Shown piece by piece: positions 25,712 through 60,761 of a stretch of 64,000 bases of DNA (positions are counted from its first letter, which is position 1; each line of letters opens with the position of its first letter). The DNA lies in IMG/VR virus record IMGVR_UViG_3300024259_000010, positions 62,001 through 126,000 of that record. The stretch is one strand, 5' to 3'. The notes beneath the pieces are model-generated. The model searched no databases. It was not told the origin of the DNA and was given only the letters and a program-made list of their open reading frames with translations. A program made the position numbers and the translations under genes.

Positions 25712-28168
25712 ATGGCTAAGAAAAAATACTCAGATTCTTCCATTGTTTCATTGGAGGGTCTAGAACATATTAGACATCGTCCTGGTATGTATGGAGTAGA
25801 TCCATTTACTAAGCAAGGTATACATCTACTTGTAAAAGAAATACTGGACAATAGTGTCGATGAAGCCAGAATGGACCCTAATAATAAACATGTGATTAAA
25901 GTATGTTTCATTAAGAAGGGAAAAGGATTCCAATGTATCGTCCATGATAAAGGACGTGGTGTTCCATTGAACAAGATTGTCCCTGTGTTTACAAAACCTG
26001 GTACGTCTGGTAAATGGGGTGACTCTTATGATGCATCTGGTGGTACACATGGTGTTGGTGCTAAAGCAACAGTTGCTATGAGTTCCATGTTTTGTGCTAT
26101 CTCTTCAGTAGCAGGTCAAGGACGTGCAGTTCTTACTGTGAAAGATACTGATGTAACAAATCATAAAGTTGCTAAAAGCAAGAAGATTAAAGAGTCTGGT
26201 ACAACAGTTGTGTTTGAACCAGATCCTGAGATCATGCCGAACGTAATGGACTTCTTCGATGAAGATAATGCATATGATGACTTAAGATCATTGATGGAAT
26301 TCATTTCTGTATTCGTTCCAAATATTTCATTTGAGATATCAACATATTCAGTACCAGTTAAATACAAAGATCTATTAGGTGATATGAATGATATTCATAC
26401 GATGCTTAATACTCTCCCAGTTGAAATAATTGCAAATACTGAACATGTGTTAGAACGTGAACAATACTTACTTAAACAGATTGGATCTAACTCTAGAGTT
26501 ATTTGGAATGGTGGAACGGTTATACAAGAACCTATCTCTATTAAGATAACATCTGGTAAAAATAAAGATAAAGAAGAAGTCTTTAAGAAGATGAGTTATG
26601 AAGTTAATTTCTTTATGACTACAGATCATCTAATGCGACCACCGGGAACACTTGGTGCAGTAAACATGATCAACATCAATGATAAACAATCTGTACATAA
26701 CACTGGGTTAGACTTTGCTATTAAGAATAGTTTGATAGATTTTATGGAAGAAAAATATAAAGAGTTCTTTACTGACTTTTATACATTACCTATCCATAAG
26801 ATATCTATTGTCAATTGGCAACACGCTACATTCACAGGACAGCATAAACATCGGTTTACTAACAATGACTTCTCACATGGGTTTAAGAAATCTCTATCTG
26901 AACATTTTGCTCTCAAAGGCAAAGAGTATTGGAAAGAGTTATATGACCTTATCTCAGAAGATATCATTGCCAAGTATGATCGTAAAAATAAGCTTGACTT
27001 AAATCTAGCTAAGTCTGATAAGAACCTTGCGTTCGAGTTAAATACATTAGGTTGTTTCTATGAGTGTCGTTCATCTGACAGTAGTATTACAGAATTGATT
27101 ATCTGTGAAGGAGCTTCAGCTGGTGGTTGGGCTAAACAAGGACGTGATGCTGATACACAAGCTATCTTCCTATTGAAGGGTAAGCCGGTAAATGCATTAC
27201 AACTAGGTTTCCAAGCATCTATGAAGAATAAGATCTTTAATGATCTGGTTAAAGTATTAGGTACCACTCCTGGTGATACTGAACTTGAAGATCTTAGATT
27301 TGGTAAGATAGTTATTCTTGCTGATGCGGATAGTGATGGTTATCATATCTCAGCTTTGATTATCGGGATCTTGAATGAAATCAATCCACAAATATTATTG
27401 ACAGGTAAGGTTGCAATTGCAAGCCCACCATTATACATTGTGAAGATTAGAAACAATTCATTATTCGTACGTGATAAACAAGGATTGCTTGAGATTAAAT
27501 CAGAAGGTTATAAAGCAGTATTTGATATCAAACTTGTAACGGATGGGAACATAGCAAAAGCATATTCACTAAGATCAGATTATTATAAATCGTTCTGTCA
27601 TATGGTTGAGCATATCGGTTCTATCTTTAATAAAGTTGGTAATAAACTAAATATTGACGCTATTATCCTAGAGCAACTTACTCACTGTATTGATGATATT
27701 GAAACTTTGAACCCTACTGCCATATGTAAGAAATTGGGACTTAAGAGCTGTACATTTGAAAAAGGTTCCAATTCATTAATTCTAGATATTGGTGAAACAG
27801 ATATCGCCGTTCCATTAAATGGTTTGGTTGAGGATGTTAAGAAGTTTATTATACCTGAGTTAAAGATGATTAATTATGATCGAATTGACTTCATGGTATC
27901 TACACGACTATCACCACTATATCAAAATGAATTAATGAGTATTACAGAACTGTACTCTATATTTGAGAAAGTTAATAGGGAGTATGGTATCACACGAATG
28001 AAAGGTCTAGGTGAGATGGATAAGAATCATCTTAAGATGACATGTCTTGATCCTGCAACTAGAACATACATTAATGTGATAGCGCCAAGCTCAGTGGAAG
28101 CTATTTACAATCTATTAGGTGTTAACACTAAAGCTAGGAAAGAACTAGTTAATAGAAATGTTAAATAA
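25712..28168 (+). CDS. gyrB: Type IIA topoisomerase B subunit (GyrB/ParE-like)
   Basis: RPGMY, EILDNSVDE, DKGRGVP, GTHGVG (GHKL ATPase); EGASA, LKGK, DADSDG, KGLGEM (TOPRIM). Confidence 0.92.
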   Translation: MAKKKYSDSSIVSLEGLEHIRHRPGMYGVDPFTKQGIHLLVKEILDNSVDEARMDPNNKHVIKVCFIKKGKGFQCIVHDKGRGVPLNKIVPVFTKPGTSGKWGDSYDASGGTHGVGAKATVAMSSMFCAISSVAGQGRAVLTVKDTDVTNHKVAKSKKIKESGTTVVFEPDPEIMPNVMDFFDEDNAYDDLRSLMEFISVFVPNISFEISTYSVPVKYKDLLGDMNDIHTMLNTLPVEIIANTEHVLEREQYLLKQIGSNSRVIWNGGTVIQEPISIKITSGKNKDKEEVFKKMSYEVNFFMTTDHLMRPPGTLGAVNMININDKQSVHNTGLDFAIKNSLIDFMEEKYKEFFTDFYTLPIHKISIVNWQHATFTGQHKHRFTNNDFSHGFKKSLSEHFALKGKEYWKELYDLISEDIIAKYDRKNKLDLNLAKSDKNLAFELNTLGCFYECRSSDSSITELIICEGASAGGWAKQGRDADTQAIFLLKGKPVNALQLGFQASMKNKIFNDLVKVLGTTPGDTELEDLRFGKIVILADADSDGYHISALIIGILNEINPQILLTGKVAIASPPLYIVKIRNNSLFVRDKQGLLEIKSEGYKAVFDIKLVTDGNIAKAYSLRSDYYKSFCHMVEHIGSIFNKVGNKLNIDAIILEQLTHCIDDIETLNPTAICKKLGLKSCTFEKGSNSLILDIGETDIAVPLNGLVEDVKKFIIPELKMINYDRIDFMVSTRLSPLYQNELMSITELYSIFEKVNREYGITRMKGLGEMDKNHLKMTCLDPATRTYINVIAPSSVEAIYNLLGVNTKARKELVNRNVK

Positions 28169-47112: not shown

Positions 47113-49092
47113 TTATCCTTGAGCACTAATAGTATCTTTATCACCATCAATATATCGCTGGAGATACATATTCTCTCTTTCACAATTGTCAACTAAATCT
47201 TTATCATAAGAATAGTTATATTCAGGTATAGAAAAATCAGTACCACATACTTCATTTAAATATACGAGATTATCAGATGGTTTCCACAATGGAACAAATG
47301 TAATATTTGGTGCATTATATAATAAATATCTACATATACGTGATTGTAATAATTTATTATATGATAGATAGTCTTCACTTATTGATCCACAAAATGTTCT
47401 AAACTGATTTTTTAATCGACCTTCTAATATAGCATTATAAGAAGGAGAATTTATCACATTATGTAGATCTTTCATATGCATTCGTTTATGCAAATGATCA
47501 CTCAAGTACATTTTATTAAATCGGTATATAACAACATCTTCCGGTTTATGTAATAAAATAAAGAATTTGTAATCTTCTATAAATTTAGGCAACCACCTAT
47601 CTCTATAGTAGAATACTCCATTAGTCACATTACGCCCTTCTAATTTTTTTACACGATTCCATAAAGTATCTCTGTTTTTATAACCATCACGATTGAACAT
47701 AATAGTACTAATAACCGCTTTTTCATTTTTATAAATTTGGTACCTTTTACTAACAAGTTCATTTTCAATGGGTTTAATAGTTTCATTAATACCTTTTCCA
47801 GATACATGGTAAAATGTATCCATATGATATATAGATTCATGTTCCATTCGTTCAGCTACAATAGTCATGTCTTTCAATCTACTGACAGCTGATTCTTTAT
47901 CAACTTCTACTGATACCGGTACATATTTTTTAACTTTATCATATACATAATCAACTATATCTTCATATGAATTAGTAGACGATACTACAAGTTTGTCGTA
48001 ATCACATACGAAATAGTTATTTTCTGATGCACCCACGGAACAGGCTCTTCGATTCATACCAGGTTCACGTCTCCTAGAGAAAGCATATAGAACATTGCAT
48101 TGTATCATGTGCTTAAAATCTATACACGTATCTACTGACTTTAATACACGAACAGCTTCATCATCTGAATATGTTAAAGGCGTAGGATCAGATTCATGCT
48201 TTATAGTTCTAACTTTTTTATCTGGTGAAAATAATCCATATAAAACATTAACTAATATATCTCCTCCTGAATCTTTATCACCGGCTTGAATTATCAGCAA
48301 AAAATCTTTCACTTTATAATTCACATTTCCATAATACTTAATATTCTTGATAGTTGATCCCCAGAATCCATGGTCGAACATTGCTCGCCCTTTACCTTCT
48401 TTAGATATTAATGTTTTATTCTCGGTTGGGTTAAAATAACCAGCTAATGCACCATAGCCAGATTGTATAGTAATCAAGTTCTTTGCTTTATATAGATAGT
48501 AGAAATCTCTATCCGGTGATATAGATGATCGTAATGTAACACTATGTCCTAGTTTGGTAAATGCTATGATCAACTTATCCATAGTATCAATATCAGCTTG
48601 TAACCGGTCTTTAGAAAACGATTTTGCCGTGGGGTAATGTAATCCTATAACAATAGTTACTTTTTTTAGATTGATATCACGTAACTTATGTTTTATCAAT
48701 CTCATGTAATTCTTAAAATCATCTTTCACTGTTACTAATTGATCGCTGAGACGTAATGCTATAACAACCTCATCATCTTCAGGTACATCATAATCCTTGC
48801 AATGATCATTTAAAATTTCAACAAATTTTTCTTCAGAATATAATTCTTTATTATCAATACACCAGTTTAAATATTTGTACATGAATGTGTCTTCATGTTT
48901 TTGATCATTGAGAATATTCCATTCAGCGGTATTGTTTCTCTTATACGCATCTGATAGTCTATAAGCTGTTCTATCTGTATTTATAAGACGTATGTCACAT
49001 ATATCTTTAAATCTAGGATGTTCCATATCTAGATATTCAATAACATCACCCACAGATCCACAATCATCTAAATTATAACAAAAATCACTCAT
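47113..49092 (-). CDS. Multidomain glycosyltransferase-like (GT11-type) / degenerate sulfotransferase-like protein
   Basis: 659 aa; IALRLSD (cf. HxRxGD) and PDRDFYYLYKAKNLITIQSGYG; second domain begins IIQAGDKDSGGD (cf. GxxRSGST). Confidence 0.45.
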   Translation of the reverse strand: MSDFCYNLDDCGSVGDVIEYLDMEHPRFKDICDIRLINTDRTAYRLSDAYKRNNTAEWNILNDQKHEDTFMYKYLNWCIDNKELYSEEKFVEILNDHCKDYDVPEDDEVVIALRLSDQLVTVKDDFKNYMRLIKHKLRDINLKKVTIVIGLHYPTAKSFSKDRLQADIDTMDKLIIAFTKLGHSVTLRSSISPDRDFYYLYKAKNLITIQSGYGALAGYFNPTENKTLISKEGKGRAMFDHGFWGSTIKNIKYYGNVNYKVKDFLLIIQAGDKDSGGDILVNVLYGLFSPDKKVRTIKHESDPTPLTYSDDEAVRVLKSVDTCIDFKHMIQCNVLYAFSRRREPGMNRRACSVGASENNYFVCDYDKLVVSSTNSYEDIVDYVYDKVKKYVPVSVEVDKESAVSRLKDMTIVAERMEHESIYHMDTFYHVSGKGINETIKPIENELVSKRYQIYKNEKAVISTIMFNRDGYKNRDTLWNRVKKLEGRNVTNGVFYYRDRWLPKFIEDYKFFILLHKPEDVVIYRFNKMYLSDHLHKRMHMKDLHNVINSPSYNAILEGRLKNQFRTFCGSISEDYLSYNKLLQSRICRYLLYNAPNITFVPLWKPSDNLVYLNEVCGTDFSIPEYNYSYDKDLVDNCERENMYLQRYIDGDKDTISAQG

Positions 49093-49161: not shown

Positions 49162-52100
49162 CTACCCGCGATTCCATATATTCTCAATAACAATATTGCT
49201 CAATATACTATCGGCGACTGGTTCAGGAGTATTTAAAACAAATGCCCATGAAACAGCTTCAACGTAGTTATCTGCGATAGGGATAATCATACCAGTATGG
49301 AAATTATCCATATTGTTAAATACAATTGATCCTACTACCTTAGATTTTTCAACACTATTCAATGTCCGTGCCGTATGATAAAATATTTTATCAACAGCCT
49401 TACCAGCATATACATATACATTATCACTGATAACACCTATTACTTTAATTGCAAAAGAAGATGCCAGATTATAGGAATCTGATCTTACACCAAATTCATG
49501 ATCTGTGATAATAAGTCTACCATTACCATCCCTCATACATAATTCATAACCATTGTTAATAAGTTCTCTATAACCATAAGTGTTACCACGTTCAATTGTA
49601 GCTGTTCCAATAGGGTCGTCCCAGTTAATACTAGAGATGTCAATGTTATCAGATCTATAACCAAGCTCACTATATGCAACACTGAGTCTATCACCTAATA
49701 GAGCAGATGATATATTAGTTACATTAGCACTTACATTATCACATAAATGTAATGGAGCATCTAATGTTGAAAATGATATAGCATCACATAGACAAGAGAT
49801 AATGGATAACTGATTGGTAATTGCATATAATCTAGTACCATCGTGTGCAAGTCTAGGTATTGTTAATAAGATATCATCTCTAACTACATTTACATTTGCA
49901 GTACCTTCTATTTCAAGTTCACCAACAGTGTCTTCCAAATCCATAGTATCATTAACAGTTGAATATACTTCAAGGGTTAACGAATCTTGATCAGTAGCAT
50001 GGTTATTATAACCTCGTGAAACTACAAAACTATCAGTTCCAGGAATTGTACAGAATGTAGTCCACGGTTGAGATGTTCCATCTATAGAGTGCAATATGTC
50101 TATAGTACCAGCATCATATGACACCAGGTATCGCCATGTATCAGTTGCTACAACAAACTTAAATGTATCATTATCAGTTTCGTAAACTATAGCTATATCT
50201 AGAACAGTAGTAGCACCAGTTTCGGGAGTGTAATCCATACCAGGTACTTTAAATCTATTAGAAGAAACATTATCTCCAGATATATTTACAATTGCTGCTA
50301 CATTGTTTGGTTCTGATAACAGATTAGCTTCAGTCCATGATATAAATTCAACAAATCCATCATCCTGCATTACTGCTGAGATTGTATCTGTAAATTTATA
50401 GAATCTAACAGCTTTAGATACAACACTGAGTTCCTTAGCTGCATTATGGAATGATGCTAAGTTGGTAGATATCTGTGTGGAGTACTCATGATCAACATAA
50501 CGCATAGGACTTGCTGTATTGGCACTATCAAATAATACAGATGTGGTTGTATTCAATTTACAGAATGCATCCAATCTAGATAAGATAGTTCCTTTTTCCA
50601 ATTTGTCCAATGTTAAGTTGAAATTATGAATAACACCAGATGGATATTCGATAAATCCTACATTATGTAGTTCGATAGCAGTAGTGCCAGAACTAACTAC
50701 AACTGTTTGTTTCCAAAGTAGTTCTGTATCAGTAACTTGGAAAAGTGTTACAACACCATTATCCTCAACTGCTACAAATCCTGGATTCAAAGCCTCATAG
50801 TCAATACTATTTAACAGTACCATAGAAGAGATAGCAGACGTTGGCGTATTAGATAATAATCGATTATCATCAATATAAGTAAACGTAGCTCCACCTTCCA
50901 GTAGTAACATAACTGTTTGAGAATTATCTGAAGCAACCAAATAGGTATTAACTCCAAGTGATACCACTTTCGATAATTCACCAATAGGTTTAGATGTTGT
51001 ATATGGATCTAAATCAGAAGTTGTGTCTGCTGCACCACTAAGGATATTCCATTTCGTTATATCATATGTTCCACTGATAATAACAATATTGTCTTCATCG
51101 ATTTTATCAAAATCAATTGCAACGGGACTACCTGCGGTTGCTAGATAATTTACTGTATTAAAAGCCGGTGGGTATAGAGTAAATACCCCAGTTGCATGAT
51201 CTATGTTGTAAGCGATTATATTACCGGAAACAAGAACTAAGCATACACCATTATCAGCAGTATGTCCAGTAGGTTCAAAATAAAGTATCTTTTCAATATC
51301 TGGACCAGTGCTAAGCTCGGTATCTAATAGGACAATATTACCATTAGCAACACTGTATGATTTTAGATCATTGCCAGATCCAGTAACATACATCGTATCA
51401 GTCACCCGTGTCATATCTTTAACAACATCTGTAGTAACTAAGGTGGCTTTATCTTTTACTTCATAGATGTTAGAATTATTAGCTTCGAGATCACGTGTCT
51501 TATTAGATACGATAAGGCTTAACCCAGTGTATCTAGAAAACTTTCCTTCAAGGATTGTATTCTCAACAGTAGGTGGAATTGTGACACCAGTAAGAGGATT
51601 GATATATGAATAATAACCTTCTTTGAACTCTCTATTATGCACAGCACATGCAGTTTTGATAGTCCCATTGTAACCACTAATAGTACTAGAGATACCATCA
51701 ATTGGATCGCATGATATTTTTCTAACCAATGTTACTTTAACATAAGGTGCTTCACCATTCTGGAAGGTCAAAGTAACATTACGTCTACCGAACAATGTAC
51801 TGTATGAACCACTATCGCAATCACCAACCACTGATTGTCCATCAATAGTAAGATCTGGAGCAATTTGACTATCATCAAGTGTGTTGGTCCAACCGATCTC
51901 AGTAAAAGTAATCGGTGCAGTTACAGGATCGAAGAACACACTTCTTGTATTAGTGATAGTGACCATTTCATTAGATGGGTCTAATGACTTCTTATTGAAG
52001 ATACCATCCCCACCAGTATCGTAATTACTTGAAACTAATTTAGGGTTTTCAAGTTTTTCAAAATACTCCTCCGCTATCCAACCATTACCATGAAACTCCG

Positions 52101-52494
52101 CAGTAGACCCTGTAGCATAAAATACATAACTACCACCACCACTAGCACCAGCGTTGTAACCAGTTAGTTGAATAGTCTGGTGATCTTCTGTTAACAATAC
52201 ATAGTTACCATCCTTTGTACCATCTGGAGGATTTCCAGAAGGAGTGTAGTTAGTAAGAGTTACAAATGCTTCACCTGCATTTTTAGAAATAGTTACTGGG
52301 TTAGGTGCAAGTGTTTCACCAGTACCCAACATAACGTAATTTGTCATGTTAGCAAACCAGTCTTCACGTATTTTCTCTAAGCCCGATTCTGTGATAAAGT
52401 TATGATCTTCTTCTGTTATCCAGGTGACTTTACCATTGACATGTTTGCCAACTTGAAAGATTACCCCAATGTCTCTTGAATTTTTAATATTCAT
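49162..52494 (-). CDS. Putative tail fibre / receptor-binding protein
   Basis: 1110 aa; N-terminal HNFITESGL...YVMLGTG...TEIG typical of baseplate-attachment domains; beta-propeller-like body; late motif at 52528-52536. Confidence 0.55.
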   Translation of the reverse strand: MNIKNSRDIGVIFQVGKHVNGKVTWITEEDHNFITESGLEKIREDWFANMTNYVMLGTGETLAPNPVTISKNAGEAFVTLTNYTPSGNPPDGTKDGNYVLLTEDHQTIQLTGYNAGASGGGSYVFYATGSTAEFHGNGWIAEEYFEKLENPKLVSSNYDTGGDGIFNKKSLDPSNEMVTITNTRSVFFDPVTAPITFTEIGWTNTLDDSQIAPDLTIDGQSVVGDCDSGSYSTLFGRRNVTLTFQNGEAPYVKVTLVRKISCDPIDGISSTISGYNGTIKTACAVHNREFKEGYYSYINPLTGVTIPPTVENTILEGKFSRYTGLSLIVSNKTRDLEANNSNIYEVKDKATLVTTDVVKDMTRVTDTMYVTGSGNDLKSYSVANGNIVLLDTELSTGPDIEKILYFEPTGHTADNGVCLVLVSGNIIAYNIDHATGVFTLYPPAFNTVNYLATAGSPVAIDFDKIDEDNIVIISGTYDITKWNILSGAADTTSDLDPYTTSKPIGELSKVVSLGVNTYLVASDNSQTVMLLLEGGATFTYIDDNRLLSNTPTSAISSMVLLNSIDYEALNPGFVAVEDNGVVTLFQVTDTELLWKQTVVVSSGTTAIELHNVGFIEYPSGVIHNFNLTLDKLEKGTILSRLDAFCKLNTTTSVLFDSANTASPMRYVDHEYSTQISTNLASFHNAAKELSVVSKAVRFYKFTDTISAVMQDDGFVEFISWTEANLLSEPNNVAAIVNISGDNVSSNRFKVPGMDYTPETGATTVLDIAIVYETDNDTFKFVVATDTWRYLVSYDAGTIDILHSIDGTSQPWTTFCTIPGTDSFVVSRGYNNHATDQDSLTLEVYSTVNDTMDLEDTVGELEIEGTANVNVVRDDILLTIPRLAHDGTRLYAITNQLSIISCLCDAISFSTLDAPLHLCDNVSANVTNISSALLGDRLSVAYSELGYRSDNIDISSINWDDPIGTATIERGNTYGYRELINNGYELCMRDGNGRLIITDHEFGVRSDSYNLASSFAIKVIGVISDNVYVYAGKAVDKIFYHTARTLNSVEKSKVVGSIVFNNMDNFHTGMIIPIADNYVEAVSWAFVLNTPEPVADSILSNIVIENIWNRG

Positions 52495-52570: not shown

Positions 52571-52606
52571 CATACATAGAGTGGGTATATACCCACTCTA
52601 TGTATG
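52571..52606. terminator. 36-bp perfect palindrome (terminator of the rSAM gene)
   Basis: CATACATAGAGTGGGTAT|ATACCCACTCTATGTATG. Confidence 0.7.
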
Positions 52607-52617
52607 ATATTTTAGTT

Positions 52618-53982
52618 TTATTTATCTTTGTTCTTATAGCGTTCTGGTACAGGCTTATTTATAAGTTTGTACAAATGATCTCTATCTAAATCTGTCACTA
52701 ATCTCATAGCAGTTTTCATGCGTAATTTATTACCCACGCATTTCATTTCAACATTATCATCAACATCATTTGTTTCAGAATGAGTTTTATTATGTTGTGG
52801 ACATGTTCCAGCACATACACCTCGTATATCACAATCTAAACAATTTGGATTCCAACCACTTCCGGTTGTTAACCACGGTGCACGTAGTTTAGGATCGATA
52901 CCAGTTTCAGCATCACCGATTTTACAATCTGTTACACATTGACATGCATGTATTTCACCATTGAATCCAATAGTTATATAATTTCTACCAGCACCACATG
53001 CCATCATTTTAGGTCGTGGTGTTAAAAAATTCCTAAGGTAATTATTTGTTAAATCAGGCCACTTGATAGATTTATCTTTATGTGTTTTACTCAAGAACCA
53101 GTCTACAGCTATATCTAATTGTTGTTCTAAATTAGAAGACCACTCTTTAAGTTGTTCTGGTGTATACCCAGGGATAATTGCTTCTCTTAAGTGAAATGTG
53201 ACACCAAGACCATTCTTGAGAAGGTTATTAAAGAATATTAACTTATCGCGCATGATAAGTGGTCCACCTTGCCCATAGTCCCCAGTACAACTCCATTGTA
53301 TCCTTCTTATTAATCTAGGGTGTGTCTTTTTGAGTCTATACATCATATCAAAAAGTTTATCATATGATCCTTTGCCATTACCAAATATCCTAGTCCTATC
53401 ATGAATCTCTTTAGGACCATCACATGATACTTTAATAGATATACCATTATCATTGAACCAGTCAGCGATTATTTCATCGCCTTCCCAATCTTTAATATGT
53501 TTAGATATTTTATCCTCAAGCAATAACCCATTTGTTGTCACATGGAATTTAGTCTTATCATATGTAGATTTGATATACTGTTGGACTTCATATACCGTTT
53601 TAAAGTTTACAAGAGCCTCACCCCCCATATATGTAATGGAAATACTTTTATACTTATCTGCTGGCAATTGTTTATCAAAGAAATATTTAATTTCCTCAAA
53701 ATTCATATTATTAGTATTAATTGCATCGTTTTCTATAAGATTATCCATAGCATAGCAATACGTACATCTCATGTTACATAATTTAGTTGTAGTTATAGCA
53801 ACAGACATTGTCTCGTCACTAATTTTTGTAGGTTTTGTATAGTTTGGTATATCTCTAGTAGGCTTAGTATGAGTTACTATATTCTCTGCATTTTTTTGAT
53901 TAGCTGCAATCATATAACTGTGATTTAGATTGTTCATTACAATTTTTTTATCACTTCCCATGACATCATATATTTTCAACAT
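52618..53982 (-). CDS. Radical SAM/SPASM-domain maturase
   Basis: CNMRCTYC (CxxxCxxC), MGGEAL, TTNG, SCDGP..IHD..R, SPASM CGAG...GEIHAC...CLDCDIRGVCAGTC...C; AAGGAG RBS. Confidence 0.92.
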   Translation of the reverse strand: MLKIYDVMGSDKKIVMNNLNHSYMIAANQKNAENIVTHTKPTRDIPNYTKPTKISDETMSVAITTTKLCNMRCTYCYAMDNLIENDAINTNNMNFEEIKYFFDKQLPADKYKSISITYMGGEALVNFKTVYEVQQYIKSTYDKTKFHVTTNGLLLEDKISKHIKDWEGDEIIADWFNDNGISIKVSCDGPKEIHDRTRIFGNGKGSYDKLFDMMYRLKKTHPRLIRRIQWSCTGDYGQGGPLIMRDKLIFFNNLLKNGLGVTFHLREAIIPGYTPEQLKEWSSNLEQQLDIAVDWFLSKTHKDKSIKWPDLTNNYLRNFLTPRPKMMACGAGRNYITIGFNGEIHACQCVTDCKIGDAETGIDPKLRAPWLTTGSGWNPNCLDCDIRGVCAGTCPQHNKTHSETNDVDDNVEMKCVGNKLRMKTAMRLVTDLDRDHLYKLINKPVPERYKNKDK

Positions 53983-54021
53983 ATTAGTTTTTTACTCCTT
54001 ATTACTTATTATTAAAAATCC

Positions 54022-54041
54022 TGGGGGTATTACTACCCCCA
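54022..54041 (-). terminator. Short GC hairpin (weak terminator/attenuator) between Cys-rich gene and rSAM gene
   Basis: TGGGGGTA-ttac-TACCCCCA; T5 follows on the minus strand after 3 nt. Confidence 0.5.
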
Positions 54042-54050
54042 TTTATTTAG

Positions 54051-57000
54051 TTATTCTCCACCTGAACCCTGATTTTCGGAACCGTGACAACCACCAGTAC
54101 AAGTTTGATCCTCTGGATCACATTGTGCTTGATCCTCATTGTCATCACATGCAAGATCGGCACATCCTTGATCTTCACCTGGATCACATGTTGTCTCATT
54201 TTCAGATTGACAACCTTGTTCTTCCTCTGCCCCACTACAACCTTGTTCTTCAGCAGGATCGCAATCGAAGTCCATAGCCTCTTCGTCATCACATGTTGTA
54301 ACTTTGGTATCACCACAATCTACAGTCAGTCCTGCATCAGTACAAGTAACAGTTGGTGCATTTTCAGAGCAACCAGCTATTTCATCACACGTACAATCTA
54401 ACCCAATCTTTTCACCATTATTTCCACATCCACCACTAGGAATAGGTTCTTCACACAAATCATTACCCTCGTAGCAATCCCCAGGTCCTGCATTATATTC
54501 ATAACAAATTGGGCAACTGATTTCAACGTTCAAACATATTGGAGATGATATAGTATCATTAACACATAGAACATCTTCTAAAGTACATGTAACACCTGAT
54601 ACACAATCAACATCCATATAATCTTCACCTGCATCACATTGAACACCGTAAATAATCTGTAACGATTTTTCTAATGACCCTGAAGGTATATTGTACTCAT
54701 CACCACATAAAGAACCATCGATCTCCATATTGATATCTAACGTTGGTCTATTTACATAACCATCGGAACATAGATTACCTTCTACTACAGATGTAGTATT
54801 AAACAAATCATATTCCTTAACATTAGTGTTTATCAAACTAGCTTCCACAAGTTTTGTATATAATTCAGTTGAATCAGCAGTTCCCTTAATAAGGTTCCCA
54901 ACAATAATTTTTAATACAGATTGTACAGTACTTCCAGGTATTTCATATGTAATAGTTTCTTGGTAGTTAGCTGGTAATAAAGCTGCACTTACTAGCTTAG
55001 TATAAAGATCAAGTTGGTCTTTAGAACTACGTAAAATAGCACCTACAATAATATCGATAGATGATTCAGTAACGGATGGCGCTATGCTGTACCCATCTGT
55101 ACACATATTACCTTCTATTGAATATTCTAACTCAATTGCTTCTTTAACACTATAACTATCAGTACATAACTTACCATCTTCAAGAGCTGGTATTATATAC
55201 GTAGCATCTTCAGAAGTAGGACCATTTAAATGTGAACTAACAAGTTTCCAATATATCTCATTGGAACCAGTAATACTTTTAATAATATTACCCATTTCAA
55301 TTTTGTTAAATAATTTGGTCACACTAGCTAGATCATACTCTACCTGTCCATCAAGATTACTCTTATAGTGATGATATATAATAAACGGAGGAGGAGGAGG
55401 ATCTTCACGTGGTACTACAATAAAGGTAGGATCGTCATCTATTGGTACAATAGGATCAGCAGGTTCAGTTCCTAGAATAGGACCAATTTTAGGTGCAATG
55501 AATTTAATACTAGCATCCGAAGGTATAGCAAGTTCAAACTGTGCAGTATCATCGTAGATAATAGAACCAAGGATTTCATGATCCTTTACTAGTGAACTAG
55601 TATCAAAGAACGTGATATCATAAGTACACATCTGTACGAACAACTGTCGCATGAGCTTTTGTTCTTCTGCAGTTAGATCACCAAACTGTACATAGTCGGA
55701 TTCTTTGATTGGTAACATCTGTACTAGAATCTCTTCCATCAAATCACCAAAGGCAATCTTAGGATTGTCAGCAGCATTCAATGAATCAGTTAAGTTCCGC
55801 AAAGAATCATTTGTATCAAACCATTCTTCATATGTAGTGATAGAACCAAATGTGTCATACTCAATATCAACAATCCCTATTTCTAGTAACTGGTAATATA
55901 AATAATCAAATGACCTATTATATACTTTATCTGAATTGGTCCTGACCTTAATAAAGTCAGATAGCTTATCGCCATATGTTGTATCCATCCAAGAAACAAG
56001 CTCTTCTTTACTAGAGAAGTTATGACCCTGTTGTACAAGTGTACGAGTAGTCAAATCAGGTGATGGATTATTCTTAGCATCGATATTCGTTAGACGAATA
56101 ACTTCATCTGCATCTGGAGTAGCCCCATCTGGTAAACCTAAAAGATATCCCTGTAAGTTTGGTTGGAAGATATAATCAATATTAATAGTAGATACATCAT
56201 TACTTGCACCATGAATCTCCAATAGAAATTCTTTTGTGATTTCAGCAAGGTTTAACTTAAACGGTCTTCTGACTGAGAACTTAGTAGGTATTTTAGATGG
56301 ACCTGGATATGTAACGTATGCTCCAATAAAGTTATTAGCATTCTGATTTGTAATCAAAACGCGAGACTTATCGAAGATAACATCCTTATCAATAAAGTTA
56401 TCAATATTATCAGGTGTTAATAATACTGTAGGTGCTTCAGCACTATATAAACAATATTGGAACAATGCAAATGCTTCTTTTATAGTTAATGGTAAACCAC
56501 CAGAGACACGATCTGATCGAACATTAATAAGATTATCATAATCCACAGTACATGATGTATTCTGGTTAGATAACATATATGTGAATGACTCTAAAGCATA
56601 CTTGATATATTCAAGCCCGATCTGATAACTAACATTAGTTCTAACAAACTGTACAAGTTTAGTTGGAAGTGTTGAGTTCTCAATTCTTGATAATTTATAA
56701 TCTTGTTCATCTAATAGATCAGGTCCAATATCAGGTTCAATACCATCATTAACTTCCTGAGCATAAGTAGTTGCTAACGTTTGTTGCATTGCTTCGATAT
56801 TACCAATATTAATATAGTCTTTAGTAATATCTTTAGATAAAACTTGTGATGTAGGTACACATCGAGATTCCGAACCAGATGTTTCAATAGCAACATATTT
56901 AGATACGAGAGTGATGTTATAATCTTTAAGTAGATTATTAGCAAGGATCTCAAGAGTTTCAATAGTACCTTTATGATTAAGAAGATATCTAATATTCTTA

Positions 57001-58037
57001 TACATAAACATCTGTTGTTTATCGTTCAATACATCGCGGTAATCACCAATACCTTTAGATTTCAGATATGCCCAAATAAGATCAGTGTGAACTGATGCTG
57101 TATGCATATTATCAATACGCTGTTGTAATACTACATTTGGTAACAATGTCCACAAGATGGTCCAATAAATAATATGACCATACTTTTCAAACTCCATGTA
57201 TTCAGGTACATTCCATCTTTCATTGAATACGATTAAGAATGATTGTAGTGCTTGTACAATAGAACCAAGTTCACTGTACTCTAAGAACTGAGGCTGTAGT
57301 TCAGTACCCTTTGCTGAATAACCAATTAATTCAAAATCATTAACTTGTATTAGATTGTTTTCCATATCAAAACAAATCTTACTATTGTTATATGCTTTAG
57401 TGTATTCATCAAACTTGTCTATATTAGAAATGTAAGTTTCCCATGCAGGAAGATTAGTCTGCTTAAGAATCAGCTCTTCATCTGCATCCAATACATCCAT
57501 ATGGATATGTTCTAATATTGTAACTGGGTAGAAAATATTCTTAATCAAATCTGCTTGATCAGGATAACGTTCGAGTAGATCAGTAAAACCATCTCTGTTG
57601 TAATAATAGAAATAACTAGTCTTACGCAATCTAGAGTCATTTAAAGTACTCTTAGTAAGGGGTATAGTACCATTTAGTCTGTGGGTTTCACCGGCTTCAA
57701 CACTACCACCTAGATCAGTATAATCATCAATAGTGAGCAAGTCTTGCACACGCATTACCATAGGTGTGTTGTTCAATCCAGCTGGATCTTCAGCATGGTT
57801 ATATGAAGCAAGTTCTGGATATAACAAATCACCATCTACTGTAAGATTGGCAATATCCGCAGTATTAAAAAATTCACCCTGTAAATTAATAACATAGGGA
57901 TTATGAGCATCTTTAATCTCATCTATTGTCAATGCTTCTAATTTATTTTTATAGTACTGTTTCATATACGGATTGTATACAGAAATAGTCTGCAGAAATC
58001 CATAAATTTCTTGAATAAAGATAGACATATTGTTCAT
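54051..58037 (-). CDS. Large virion baseplate-type protein (phiKZ gp128-like) with repeat region and Cys/acidic C-terminal tail
   Basis: 1328 aa; divergent from portal; HTDLIWAYLKSKG and FMYKNIRYLLNHKGT are baseplate-wedge-like; Pro linker, repeats, then 25 Cys in the last 195 aa. Confidence 0.7.
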   Translation of the reverse strand: MNNMSIFIQEIYGFLQTISVYNPYMKQYYKNKLEALTIDEIKDAHNPYVINLQGEFFNTADIANLTVDGDLLYPELASYNHAEDPAGLNNTPMVMRVQDLLTIDDYTDLGGSVEAGETHRLNGTIPLTKSTLNDSRLRKTSYFYYYNRDGFTDLLERYPDQADLIKNIFYPVTILEHIHMDVLDADEELILKQTNLPAWETYISNIDKFDEYTKAYNNSKICFDMENNLIQVNDFELIGYSAKGTELQPQFLEYSELGSIVQALQSFLIVFNERWNVPEYMEFEKYGHIIYWTILWTLLPNVVLQQRIDNMHTASVHTDLIWAYLKSKGIGDYRDVLNDKQQMFMYKNIRYLLNHKGTIETLEILANNLLKDYNITLVSKYVAIETSGSESRCVPTSQVLSKDITKDYINIGNIEAMQQTLATTYAQEVNDGIEPDIGPDLLDEQDYKLSRIENSTLPTKLVQFVRTNVSYQIGLEYIKYALESFTYMLSNQNTSCTVDYDNLINVRSDRVSGGLPLTIKEAFALFQYCLYSAEAPTVLLTPDNIDNFIDKDVIFDKSRVLITNQNANNFIGAYVTYPGPSKIPTKFSVRRPFKLNLAEITKEFLLEIHGASNDVSTINIDYIFQPNLQGYLLGLPDGATPDADEVIRLTNIDAKNNPSPDLTTRTLVQQGHNFSSKEELVSWMDTTYGDKLSDFIKVRTNSDKVYNRSFDYLYYQLLEIGIVDIEYDTFGSITTYEEWFDTNDSLRNLTDSLNAADNPKIAFGDLMEEILVQMLPIKESDYVQFGDLTAEEQKLMRQLFVQMCTYDITFFDTSSLVKDHEILGSIIYDDTAQFELAIPSDASIKFIAPKIGPILGTEPADPIVPIDDDPTFIVVPREDPPPPPFIIYHHYKSNLDGQVEYDLASVTKLFNKIEMGNIIKSITGSNEIYWKLVSSHLNGPTSEDATYIIPALEDGKLCTDSYSVKEAIELEYSIEGNMCTDGYSIAPSVTESSIDIIVGAILRSSKDQLDLYTKLVSAALLPANYQETITYEIPGSTVQSVLKIIVGNLIKGTADSTELYTKLVEASLINTNVKEYDLFNTTSVVEGNLCSDGYVNRPTLDINMEIDGSLCGDEYNIPSGSLEKSLQIIYGVQCDAGEDYMDVDCVSGVTCTLEDVLCVNDTISSPICLNVEISCPICYEYNAGPGDCYEGNDLCEEPIPSGGCGNNGEKIGLDCTCDEIAGCSENAPTVTCTDAGLTVDCGDTKVTTCDDEEAMDFDCDPAEEQGCSGAEEEQGCQSENETTCDPGEDQGCADLACDDNEDQAQCDPEDQTCTGGCHGSENQGSGGE

Positions 58038-58157: not shown

Positions 58158-60761
58158 ATGAGAAATGATTCTATAGCAGTTAGAACAAAAGAAAGGTTAT
58201 TGTCCCTACTTGGGATTGAGTCCTCTTTGAATAAAGAGAATACAAATAATCTTGTGGAGAAATTAAAGAGACCTGGGCAGTTTAGTAATGTTGAAGAACA
58301 GTTACTACGGTCATCTATAAACAATACACAATCGCATTCTATTGATAATCTTAAACACGATATGTTAGCAATATCCACTGATGTTAATAAGAAGATTGAT
58401 CATAACAAATCGTTCCAGTCAATGGTACCTGAGATAGGTAAAGCCAAGACAGTACTAGTACCATCTATTCTATCACCTAGTGATATGTTTAGTAATTATG
58501 TAACATGTGATCTAGATACTGATAAACTAGATGAAGTTACTAAATCAAAAATTATAGAAATCATTAATGTCCGTATGAATGATAGATTGAAGATCGGTAA
58601 TCTATTATCTGAATGGATCGGTGATGCATTGTTCGACTACGGTGCAGTTCCTGTTATGACTCTTCCTAAGAAAGCCATTTCATTGTTAGTTACGAGTATT
58701 GCACATCAGGAAGATGAAAATGCTCAACAAGCTACATCAGATACCCTTGGTATTAATCCTAAGAAGAGAATTGATGAGAATGAACAAAAGGATGGAATGA
58801 CTTCTGTTAGTTATGAAATCGCTATTGACAAAGTTGACTTATATGGTAGAACGGATGACTCTGTTGAAATCTCAACTGAAGATCAGAAAGTAATTGACAA
58901 AGCTGGTGATATTGATTTTGTAGATATTGAAATAGATACTGAAGATTATGAAGCCGGAATGATGACTACTGATTATTCAGATGCTGAGAAGATTGAAGAG
59001 AGAGAGGCTGTATTAAAAAAGGTTAATAATAGTCAATCTGATCTTATTAAATCATCTACTGAACTTATCAAAGAAAACTTTAGTCTATCTATTGACACTA
59101 GAAAAATAAACAATGTTAAGACTAAAGAAAGTAATATTAATAAAAAAGTTCAAGAGAAGATGGATGCTTTAATGCAAACATCTGGTTCCGAAAAGATTTA
59201 TACTATTTCTGATGTAGGCTACCCCTCTGAAGATGATGAGCCTTATATTCAGAAGCTTCCTACTAATGCAGTTATTCCTATCTTTGTTCCTGGTGCACCA
59301 AGTTCACATATTGGTTACTTTGTAATCATTGACCAGTTTGGTAATCCTATCGATGAGTCTTATTCATATGTAAGTGAGAACCATACTCTTGGTACTCCAT
59401 ATCTTGCAACAATGAATGATATCTCAAATAGAGACTTAGGGGCATCAGCTAAGAAGTATAATATTCTTTCTACTGTTTTTGAATTAACATTGAAAAAGAC
59501 GATTGAAGAATCTATCAAGTCTATAGGTGTTGATGCAGCAAGCTTTCCTGATGACAAGAGACTCTATTCTTGCCTATTCAATAGAGCACTTCACAAGCAG
59601 CGTGTAACCTTATTATACGTACCTACAACTCATATGACTTACTATGCATATGATTACAGACCCGATGGTACTGGTAAAGGATTAATGGAAGATAGTTCCT
59701 TCATCATTAGAATGAGAACTTCATTCATGATTGCTGAAGTTTTATCTGCTCTTAATAATGCTACTGATAGACATAAGATCTCATTTGATCTTGGTGATAA
59801 TAAAGGTACTAACGTAGAGCAAGTCATGGGTCTATTGAAAGATAGTTTCATTACTAAGTATATGTATAACCTTGATCATAATCCAATGAATGTTATGCGC
59901 GATATTATTGCACGTAGTGTATCTATCGTTCCAAAAGAAATTGGTGGTATTACAAATCTTAATCTTGATACTGAAACTACTCAAGGACAAGCTGGTAATA
60001 GTAAACCTGAAGTAGCTGATAACTTAACTGATATGATCATTACATCGACTAAGGTTCCAGCTTCTATCTTCAATGCATTGAATGATGCTGAGTTCTCAAG
60101 GTCAGTGGCTACAAACAACTTACTCTTCGCAAACTTCATCAGATTCCTTCAAGGTATTACATGTAATAAAACTGAAAACATTGTTAAAGGATATGTCCGT
60201 AACTCTTATTCAGTATTGAAAGAAATTATCGAAGTGCTTAAAGAAAACAATTGTGATGTTGATACTACTGAAAAGCTTAAGCTTATGTTAGACCACATCG
60301 TTTCAAATATCTTTGTGACACTACCATCACCTGACATCTCTCCTGATAAGGCTAGATATGCAGAGCTGGAAGAAGTTATCAAAACTATTGATGCTATTGC
60401 TGAGAAACTAATCCCTGATGATATGATCGTCCTTGAAGATGATAAGTCAGCAGAAACACTTAAAGCTATTCGTGCTAGTATTGTTGTTGATCTAGTTAAG
60501 GAAGCAGTACATAAGATTGGTGCTGGTGGTATTATCGATACGACTATGTTCGATGATGATAATATGGATATATTAAAATTAGAAAAATATAATCATATCT
60601 TCCATAACTTCTCTGCTGCTATTGCAGCACTACAGAATTCACTTAAACCAGGTGCGCCTGCTGAAGGTGGAGAGACTGATGAGACAACTGATGATGGTGA
60701 TGATGATGTACCATCTGCTTCATGGGAAAGCCTAGAAGAAAAAGACGACACTACTGAATAG
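58158..60761 (+). CDS. Portal protein (phiKZ gp129-like)
   Basis: 867 aa; VPSILSPSD, VIPIFVPG...HIGYFVIIDQFGNP, YYAYDYRPDGTGKGL, EFSRSV...NLL. Confidence 0.75.
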   Translation: MRNDSIAVRTKERLLSLLGIESSLNKENTNNLVEKLKRPGQFSNVEEQLLRSSINNTQSHSIDNLKHDMLAISTDVNKKIDHNKSFQSMVPEIGKAKTVLVPSILSPSDMFSNYVTCDLDTDKLDEVTKSKIIEIINVRMNDRLKIGNLLSEWIGDALFDYGAVPVMTLPKKAISLLVTSIAHQEDENAQQATSDTLGINPKKRIDENEQKDGMTSVSYEIAIDKVDLYGRTDDSVEISTEDQKVIDKAGDIDFVDIEIDTEDYEAGMMTTDYSDAEKIEEREAVLKKVNNSQSDLIKSSTELIKENFSLSIDTRKINNVKTKESNINKKVQEKMDALMQTSGSEKIYTISDVGYPSEDDEPYIQKLPTNAVIPIFVPGAPSSHIGYFVIIDQFGNPIDESYSYVSENHTLGTPYLATMNDISNRDLGASAKKYNILSTVFELTLKKTIEESIKSIGVDAASFPDDKRLYSCLFNRALHKQRVTLLYVPTTHMTYYAYDYRPDGTGKGLMEDSSFIIRMRTSFMIAEVLSALNNATDRHKISFDLGDNKGTNVEQVMGLLKDSFITKYMYNLDHNPMNVMRDIIARSVSIVPKEIGGITNLNLDTETTQGQAGNSKPEVADNLTDMIITSTKVPASIFNALNDAEFSRSVATNNLLFANFIRFLQGITCNKTENIVKGYVRNSYSVLKEIIEVLKENNCDVDTTEKLKLMLDHIVSNIFVTLPSPDISPDKARYAELEEVIKTIDAIAEKLIPDDMIVLEDDKSAETLKAIRASIVVDLVKEAVHKIGAGGIIDTTMFDDDNMDILKLEKYNHIFHNFSAAIAALQNSLKPGAPAEGGETDETTDDGDDDVPSASWESLEEKDDTTE

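Follow-up and report, generated by a model that had tools for sequence, protein, structure and literature searches.

A cysteine-rich baseplate protein tail and an adjacent radical SAM/SPASM enzyme in an uncultured giant phage: a proposed thioether-stapling system

The wedge protein gene and its surroundings

The window analysed here is a stretch of 64,000 nt from a 236-kb phiKZ-like contig (IMG/VR record IMGVR_UViG_3300024259_000010), and the phage is known only from metagenome contigs. On its minus strand, the window encodes a 1328-aa protein (54051-58037), the homologue of the phiKZ gp128 baseplate wedge protein. The conserved core comprises residues 1-903 (55329-58037, minus strand) and ends in a Pro-rich linker (about 55380-55433). 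An alignment profile of the protein hits PHIKZ128 (PDB 9xqs_C) with an E value of 3e-21, together with two other chains annotated as ‘virion structural protein’. The PHIKZ128 chain in the PDB is 724 aa, and gp128 is the wedge protein in the structural atlas of phiKZ (PMC13250141), with one gp128 per wedge and six wedges. The protein also matches phrog_3222, and a tblastn search found virion structural proteins of 142 jumbo-phage records. It is 34% identical to the protein designated P0011 over residues 1 to about 903.

The gene lies beside homologues of the portal, tube and sheath genes. The portal homologue (58158-60761, plus strand) is divergently transcribed and fixes the gp128/gp129 synteny, with a match to PHIKZ129 (PDB 9xpe_M, E 1.3e-41) and to phrog_3004.

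Residues 904-1133 (54639-55328, minus strand) form a lineage-specific middle module. This contains three helix-like repeats (55239-55301, 54990-55052 and 54846-54908) and four G-x-[LM]-C-x-D-x-Y motifs (55152-55175, 55089-55112, 54756-54779 and 54693-54716). No homologue was found in the relatives past about residue 903, in the phage collection searched or in the PDB. The single-sequence AlphaFold model is uninformative, with a pLDDT of 34.

The C-terminal tail, the proposed substrate, comprises residues 1134-1328 (54054-54638, minus strand; stop codon 54051-54053). These 195 aa hold 25 of the 34 Cys of the protein, against 9 in the first 1133 aa, in a background of 26 Asp, 24 Glu and 24 Gly with no Arg. 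The Cys are spaced mostly 6-11 residues apart, and the last 70 residues (54054-54263) form 8-9-residue units of the type C-D-P-x-E-[DE]-Q-G. The tail is not a DNA tandem repeat and is identical in a second sample (L004). It matches no Pfam or NCBIfam family. The same model is uninformative for the tail.

Eleven of the tail Cys are Cx3[DE], including 7 of the last 10, as stated in the preliminary description, all of whose numbers were reproduced. The Cys density is far beyond chance. However, the Cx3[DE] enrichment in this tail alone is only marginal, with 11 observed against 6.3 expected (shuffle p about 0.023, uncorrected). Offsets -3 (11) and +2 (10) score about as high, and 14 of the 25 Cys lack D/E at +4. 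The motif becomes convincing only through an independent homologue, described below.

The wedge gene is followed, after a spacer of 68 nt, by an intact and co-oriented radical SAM (rSAM)/SPASM gene of 454 aa (52618-53982, minus strand). A consensus scan of the spacer identified a terminator-like hairpin (54022-54041, minus strand) with an 8-bp stem containing 5 G-C pairs, followed by GGATTTTT. It may attenuate read-through so that less enzyme than substrate is made. An AAGGAG ribosome-binding site (53995-54000, minus strand) lies 12 nt before the ATG of the rSAM gene. Downstream is a gene for a 1110-aa protein of no known function (49162-52494, minus strand), which is not Cys-rich.

The tail is the only Cys-dense ORF segment in the 64-kb window, with no other ORF reaching 8 Cys per 50 aa. 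A permissive scan for ORFs of at least 30 aa with at least 5 Cys in 30 aa found no credible Cys-rich small ORF near the enzyme. No sulfatase domain was found in the seven neighbouring large proteins scanned (47-64 kb).

Relationships of the radical SAM/SPASM enzyme

The enzyme belongs to the radical SAM superfamily, with a PF04055 score of 44.4 bits against a cut-off of 29.5. The CX3CX2C cluster motif (53755-53778; C69, C73 and C76) and G120-G121-E122 are invariant across 11 family members. The same is true of the seven Cys of the SPASM region (52738-52998; C329, C347, C381, C384, C390, C394 and C415), although the Pfam SPASM model itself did not report a hit. The AlphaFold model has a pLDDT of 83.7 and matches CteB, anSME and ChlB over its full length. 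The N-terminal module (53863-53982) is predicted to have three strands and one helix, and may be a shortened RRE.

The nearest characterised relatives are thioether formers. The top HMM hits are PapB, nif11-rSAM, QhpD and SCIFF maturase, but the enzyme falls far below every curated equivalog cut-off and its chemistry cannot be read from family membership. The best of 60 NCBIfam families is PapB (NF047865), at 127.3 bits against a cut-off of 340. QhpD (TIGR03906) scores 107.2 against 453 and SCIFF maturase ScfB/CteB (TIGR03974) 91.3 against 425. Lower scores were recorded for the anaerobic sulfatase maturase anSME (TIGR03942; 72.8 against 349), the maturase of CXXX-repeat targets (59.2 against 350) and TIGR04463 (50.8 against 525).

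PapB, which matures the freyrasin precursor PapA, acts on repeated Cys-X3-Asp/Glu motifs and tolerates spacings of 0-6 (PMC9413430). PapA is a short leader-core peptide with six regular motifs, while only 11 of the 25 Cys fit the motif in the phage tail. The phage enzyme also has a shorter N-terminal module than PapB.

CteB of Clostridium thermocellum (PDB 5wgg/5why) is the closest solved structure, both by sequence profile (E 9e-54) and by fold (5wgg; Foldseek E 1e-19, TM about 0.66), at about 18% identity. No SCIFF-like small ORF was found in the window. A true SCIFF maturase, P0003 in locus L169, has a PF13165 peptide upstream and falls in the other half of the enzyme tree.

QhpD makes intramolecular Cys-to-Asp/Glu thioethers in QhpC, which stays a structural subunit of quinohemoprotein amine dehydrogenase and is not released as a peptide (PMC13692751). 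QhpC is a small subunit with an N-terminal leader bound by an RRE, whereas the proposed target here is the C-terminal tail of a 1328-aa phage baseplate protein. The neighbours scanned show no dehydrogenase genes.

CrpC of Methanococcus voltae, a member of TIGR04463, has been shown experimentally to install ranthionine cross-links in CrpA, a large Cys-rich protein with C-terminal repeated Cys motifs (PMC13692751). CrpA is a 29-kDa archaeal protein of unknown function with a leader-like N-terminus, and that paper does not mention phages.

Distribution of the tail and enzyme among related phages

A second, distant phage (loci L167/L168) keeps the gene pair. It has sheath, tube, portal, a 1004-aa gp128 homologue (29% identical, E 3e-67), an rSAM enzyme (P0023) and a 988-aa protein in the same order. 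The last 76 aa of its gp128 homologue hold 5 Cys, 4 of them Cx3[DE], with none having D/E at +2 or +3 (p=0.0056). The two gp128-linked enzymes fall in one clade (SH-aLRT 98) although only about 24% identical, so the pairing is old.

The features also disappear together. Eight other gp128-homologue lineages have neither a Cys tail nor an adjacent rSAM gene, and 2/2 against 0/8 gives a Fisher p of about 0.02. The co-occurrence test called for in the preliminary description came out in favour, but only two independent lineages carry the pair, the contexts of the eleven other members of the enzyme's 13-member clade not having been retrieved, and the statistics are thin.

On the wedge tree, the window groups with its two closest relatives, L005 and L007, and L168 is basal. 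L005 and L007 carry a GlcNAc-type glycosyltransferase in the slot of the enzyme and a Cys-poor tail, which implies a joint replacement of tail and enzyme. The 1110-aa protein downstream of the rSAM gene is syntenic with the 1036-aa protein of L005 and the 988-aa protein of L168.

Proposed modification of the baseplate tail

It is proposed that the enzyme takes the tail as its substrate in the cytoplasm of the infected cell, while the tail is still part of the full-length structural protein. A hydrogen would be abstracted from a side-chain carbon of Asp or Glu, mostly four residues after a Cys, and that carbon joined to the Cys sulfur. This is a ranthionine-type thioether, the reaction of PapB, QhpD and CteB. 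The result would be a string of small covalent rings that stays attached to the wedge protein, giving a compact, protease-resistant and reduction-proof appendage at the baseplate periphery. Unlike disulfides, such links can form in the reducing cytoplasm and survive reducing environments.

This reading agrees with the preliminary description and is held with moderate confidence as a whole. That the tail is the substrate is likely, and, if so, a Cys-to-Asp/Glu thioether is the likely bond. It is more probable still that the tail stays on the virion. Each of these is inferred, in the absence of biochemical or virion mass-spectrometry evidence. In addition, the N-terminal module of the enzyme has only three strands and one helix, there is no N-terminal leader next to the core, and recognition of the tail by the enzyme is unexplained. 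A terminator-like hairpin separates the genes.

It is possible, although unlikely, that the tail is the substrate of a different chemistry, such as sulfur-to-alpha-carbon (sactionine) links, Cys-to-formylglycine oxidation as by anaerobic sulfatase maturases, or a carbon-carbon or other radical cross-link. SPASM enzymes of quite different chemistries also score, including anSME, the sactisynthase RumMC (59 bits) and cyclophane formers (47-68 bits), and anSME and ChlB are the next-best fold matches after CteB. Several tail motifs read C-x-P-x-E, which loosely resembles the sulfatase C-x-P-x-R motif. However, the best sequence, profile and fold matches are all non-alpha thioether formers. The family has seven conserved SPASM Cys, as does CrpC; CteB-type enzymes probably also have seven and leave one iron free for the substrate thiolate, whereas anSME appears to have eight. 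The tail has no Arg and so no sulfatase motif, no sulfatase domain was found among the neighbours scanned, and the D/E at +4 is conserved in the second phage.

It is equally unlikely that the tail is an ordinary metal-binding or disulfide-forming acidic appendage and that the enzyme acts on another protein, a small molecule or a host target, the adjacency being only shared history. Cys/Asp/Glu-rich segments can bind metal ions, only two lineages show the pair and the hairpin lies between the genes. Jumbo phages often carry rSAM genes in other contexts, for example the Erwinia and Campylobacter phages. Against this, tail and enzyme were kept together across deep divergence and were lost together. 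The tail has few of the CxC, CC or CxxC pairs typical of metal-thiolate clusters, and no other Cys-rich or precursor-like ORF was found near the enzyme. Relatives of the enzyme in viral contigs sit next to Cys-dense ORFs in most loci.

The release of the tail as a free bioactive peptide, an alternative raised in the preliminary description, is very unlikely: although the layout resembles a precursor with its core at the C-terminus and the enzyme family is otherwise mostly peptide maturases, no protease or exporter domain was recognised among the neighbours scanned, which are syntenic virion genes, no obvious cleavage motif was seen before residue 1134, a 1100-aa structural protein would be an extravagant leader, and the glycosyltransferase of the relatives points to decoration of the virion protein.

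Enzymatic thioether cross-links in whole proteins, as opposed to short peptides, have been shown in very few cases, such as QhpC and CrpA. Among the papers returned by our literature searches, none described a radical SAM enzyme acting on a phage structural protein. If confirmed, the system would add a new kind of covalent reinforcement to virion biology, and would explain why so many phage genomes carry orphan rSAM/SPASM genes. It would also provide leaderless enzymes acting on protein tails and reduction-proof stapled modules that could be useful for phage engineering. The swap between rSAM enzyme and glycosyltransferase suggests a hot-spot for host-range or stability adaptation.

More tentatively, phages may use RiPP-type radical SAM chemistry as a general way to harden or functionalise virion proteins. 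The stapled wedge protein would then represent one variant of a large undescribed class, with the wedge C-terminus an exchangeable platform for post-translational decoration. Of 79 viral loci fetched with relatives of this enzyme, 59 hold an ORF with at least 12 Cys per 50 aa, and in 30 loci that ORF is at least 300 aa. After dereplication this is 21 of 34 enzyme clusters. The Cys-dense segment is often the C-terminus of a protein of 300 to 2600 aa.

CXXX-repeat rSAM target systems (TIGR04114/TIGR04115, PF27846), in which Cys-repeat proteins are paired with SPASM maturases, are abundant in these loci, often at the C-terminus of large proteins. The enzymes of loci L008, L011/L003 and L012 are neighbours of the window's clade in the tree. 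Those targets have a strict period-4 C-[EQ]-x-x repeat at 12-16 Cys per 50 aa. The tail of the wedge protein has at most 8 Cys per 50 aa and gave no hit to the repeat models even at lenient thresholds (Pfam at E up to 10, NCBIfam at E up to 1).

The wedge protein, its tail and the adjacent enzyme

The open reading frame (ORF) at 54051-58037 (minus strand) encodes a protein of 1328 aa, and the ORF at 52618-53982 (minus strand) encodes a protein of 454 aa. The spacer between the two genes is exactly 68 nt. The last 195 residues of the large protein hold 25 of its 34 Cys, in a background of D 26, E 24 and G 24, with no Arg. This Cys density is far beyond chance, at 12.8% in the tail against 0.8% in the first 1133 residues. 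The eleven Cx3[DE] pentamers listed in the preliminary description are all present, including 7 of the last 10 Cys. However, the Cx3[DE] excess within this tail alone is modest, with eleven observed against 6.3 expected (shuffle p about 0.023, with no correction for multiple offsets), and offsets -3 and +2 give 11 and 10. The tail is not an assembly or repeat artefact, as TRF finds no tandem repeat in the DNA and the tail is identical in a second assembly of the same phage from another sample (L004).

The window belongs to a 235,833-bp IMG/VR contig, and a megablast search of the region against 50,697 deposited phage genomes found no near relative. The surrounding genes are phiKZ-type, namely the tail sheath, the tail tube and a divergently transcribed homolog of the PHIKZ129 portal. 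A profile of the large protein and its relatives hits the PDB chain 9xqs_C, ‘PHIKZ128’, at E 3e-21. The 2026 structural atlas of phiKZ identifies gp128 as the baseplate wedge protein, with one gp128 and two gp87 in each of six wedges, and gp128 contacting the outer peripheral gp139 band (PMC13250141). Homology to relatives covers residues 1 to about 903 and ends at a Pro-rich linker. Residues 904-1328 are specific to this lineage and comprise a repeat module, with three helix-like units and four G-x-[LM]-C-x-D-x-Y motifs, followed by the Cys/acidic tail. No match to this part was found in the phage collection, where the C-terminal 449 aa were searched by tblastn, or in the PDB. The structure predicted for these 449 aa without an alignment has a pLDDT of 34 and is unusable.

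The 454-aa protein passes the Pfam radical SAM threshold. Against NCBIfam it hits 60 SPASM-type families, of which PapB is the best at 127 bits, followed by the nif11-peptide maturase, QhpD and the SCIFF maturase, although every score is far below its curated cut-off. An exhaustive phmmer search over 1.84 billion representatives found only 26 relatives at E up to 1e-30, the best at 35% identity. In an alignment with the ten best, CX3CX2C, GGE and seven SPASM Cys are invariant. The AlphaFold model is confident (pLDDT 83.7) and shows an N-terminal module of three strands and one helix, which may be a shortened peptide-recognition element (RRE). The closest solved structure is the thioether synthase CteB, both by profile (E 9e-54) and by fold. 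The GC content of the gene is 0.325 against 0.339 for the window, so it is a resident gene and not a recent transfer. No cultured phage was found to have a close relative of this enzyme, or of the second gp128-linked enzyme described below.

A separate small precursor was rejected, as the only other Cys-enriched small ORFs are 26 kb or more away from the enzyme gene or lie antisense within the portal gene. One of these, a 64-aa ORF at 26779-26973 (minus strand) with 7 Cys in 30 residues, is 26 kb away and probably unrelated. Just downstream of the rSAM stop codon, at 52571-52606, there is a perfect palindromic hairpin with a 16-bp stem, which is terminator-like on the plus strand and precedes the next gene (start at 52494). 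The downstream proteins of 1110 aa and 659 aa have no PDB or Pfam match. The 659-aa ORF (47113-49092, minus strand) also has no PHROG match and no counterpart in the syntenic blocks of two related phage loci (L005 and L168), and is a lineage-specific insertion in the baseplate gene block.

Co-occurrence of the tail and the enzyme

The nearest homologs of the wedge protein are P0011 (L005/L006, a 230-kb contig) and P0012 (locus L007). Both lack the Cys tail, and the wedge C-terminus is instead Pro/Thr/acidic. In both, the slot that holds the rSAM gene in the window (52618-53982) is occupied by a GlcNAc-type glycosyltransferase (PF11397; E 4.5e-54 in L007, weak in L005), at L005:12769-13974 and L007:3875-5527. 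This may be an alternative decoration module at the same position. The rest of the block is syntenic with the window, in the order sheath, tube, portal, wedge, the roughly 1000-aa protein and DUF7208.

A member of the enzyme family, P0023, led to a third phage (L167/L168). There the order is sheath, tube, portal, a 1004-aa wedge homolog (29% identical, E 3e-67), the rSAM gene, a 988-aa protein and DUF7208. That wedge protein ends in an acidic tail of 76 residues with five Cys, four of which have D/E at +4 and none at +2 or +3 (shuffle p=0.0056). This is an independent test of a motif specified in advance and, combined with the value for the window, Fisher's method gives p about 0.001. Six further wedge-homolog lineages from IMG/VR (L172 to L179) have neither a Cys tail nor an rSAM gene. 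The tally is therefore 2/2 against 0/8, although only two lineages were found to carry the pair, and the gene contexts of the closest enzyme relatives (P0013 to P0022 and P0034), which sit on contigs of 1.3-8 kb, do not contribute to it. A degenerate DNA pattern for a motif of the enzyme clade gave 27 loci, none of which encodes a relative, and the wedge profile found nothing in the genome contigs.

On the wedge-protein tree, L168 is basal to a group of the window, L005 and L007 (supports 100/99 and 89/93). On the enzyme tree, the window's enzyme (with P0013) and P0023 (with P0034) form one clade (SH-aLRT 98) inside a 13-member clade (99). The simplest history is one old acquisition of tail plus enzyme, followed by joint replacement of both by a different tail plus a glycosyltransferase in the L005/L007 lineage.

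Proposed modification of the tail

The enzyme is an intact three-cluster SPASM protein, the Cys/acidic C-terminal tail of the baseplate wedge protein is encoded immediately upstream, and the pair has been conserved across deep divergence and lost together. From this it is inferred, in the absence of direct proof of a covalent bond, that during infection the enzyme binds the unfolded tail of the full-length wedge protein. It would coordinate a tail Cys at the open iron of its first auxiliary cluster, use the 5'-deoxyadenosyl radical to abstract hydrogen from the side chain of an Asp or Glu, preferentially at +4, and form a sulfur-to-carbon thioether, repeating this along the tail. It has been reported that PapB does this on Cys-X3-Asp/Glu motifs and tolerates spacings of 0-6 (PMC9413430), while QhpD and CrpC do it on whole proteins (PMC13692751).

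The product would be a chain of small rings at the baseplate periphery, resistant to proteases and reductants. Six copies per virion follows from the phiKZ architecture. A terminator-like hairpin followed by a strong ribosome-binding site lies between the two genes and could lower enzyme expression relative to substrate, although this is speculative. It is similarly speculative that the four C-x-D-x-Y motifs upstream could be extra sites.

Two other readings are considered unlikely, and about equally so: that a different chemistry acts on the same tail, or that the tail is a plain metal-binding or disulfide module and the enzyme has another substrate. Release of the tail as a peptide is considered very unlikely.

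The proposed system would work like QhpD/QhpC, PapB/PapA, CteB/SCIFF and CrpC/CrpA, but it is a member of none of these families, as every equivalog cut-off is missed and the defining partners are absent. The enzyme is a member of the radical SAM and SPASM groupings, and the substrate carrier is a member of the gp128 wedge family. The inferred chemistry and the concept are known. What would be new is the substrate class, a virion baseplate protein, the architecture, with the core fused to the C-terminus of a large structural protein, and the enzyme clade. Full-text literature searches on radical SAM enzymes, thioethers and phage structural proteins returned no paper describing such a system in phages, and the 2026 CrpC paper (PMC13692751) does not mention phages.

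Relatives of the enzyme in other viral genomes

A scan of IMG/VR with the enzyme alignment returned 79 other loci (L008-L086). In 59 of them an ORF has at least 12 Cys per 50 aa, and in 30 of those loci the largest such ORF is at least 300 aa (up to 2593 aa). After dereplication at 50% identity, the 59 of 79 loci become 21 of 34 enzyme clusters. The comparison figures are 5 of 80 metagenome loci, mostly short, non-viral contigs, and 0 of 8 control phage loci. In the ORFs examined, the dense stretch usually lies at the C-terminus of an ORF co-oriented with the enzyme gene.

Most of these targets are period-4 C-[EQ]-x-x repeats with 12-16 Cys per 50 aa, the class covered by TIGR04114 and PF27846. 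Examples are found at L057:6224-10006, L018:5966-8971, L011:2-7783 and L016:920-5234, and several of the contigs are of jumbo-phage size. The tail in the window is a different, sparser pattern that matches none of those models. The carrier proteins are mostly unannotated, although one has an ALK/LTK glycine-rich domain (L035).

In a 209-kb contig (SRR21686420_4154; L003:9201-11719), the rSAM homolog P0002 is 572 aa, and family models match it in two pieces (about residues 81-166 and 196-479). An HNH/NUMOD3 homing-endonuclease-like gene abuts its start. About 9 kb upstream, three Cys-repeat proteins of at least 379 aa, 258 aa and 1804 aa lie in a row.

The cultured jumbo phage Erwinia phage phiEaH2 (JX316028, record positions 62552-65914; L212:5964-9326) has a 68-aa ORF ending in four Cys, each separated by three residues. 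It lies one gene, a 295-aa hypothetical, upstream of two adjacent annotated radical SAM genes, near virion structural genes, and could serve as a model for phage rSAM-peptide systems. Campylobacter phages of 157-210 kb, such as F379, CPt10 and CP21 (MT932329, NC_027996 and NC_019507), carry radical SAM domain genes that match the N-terminal half of the L168 enzyme at about 29% identity.
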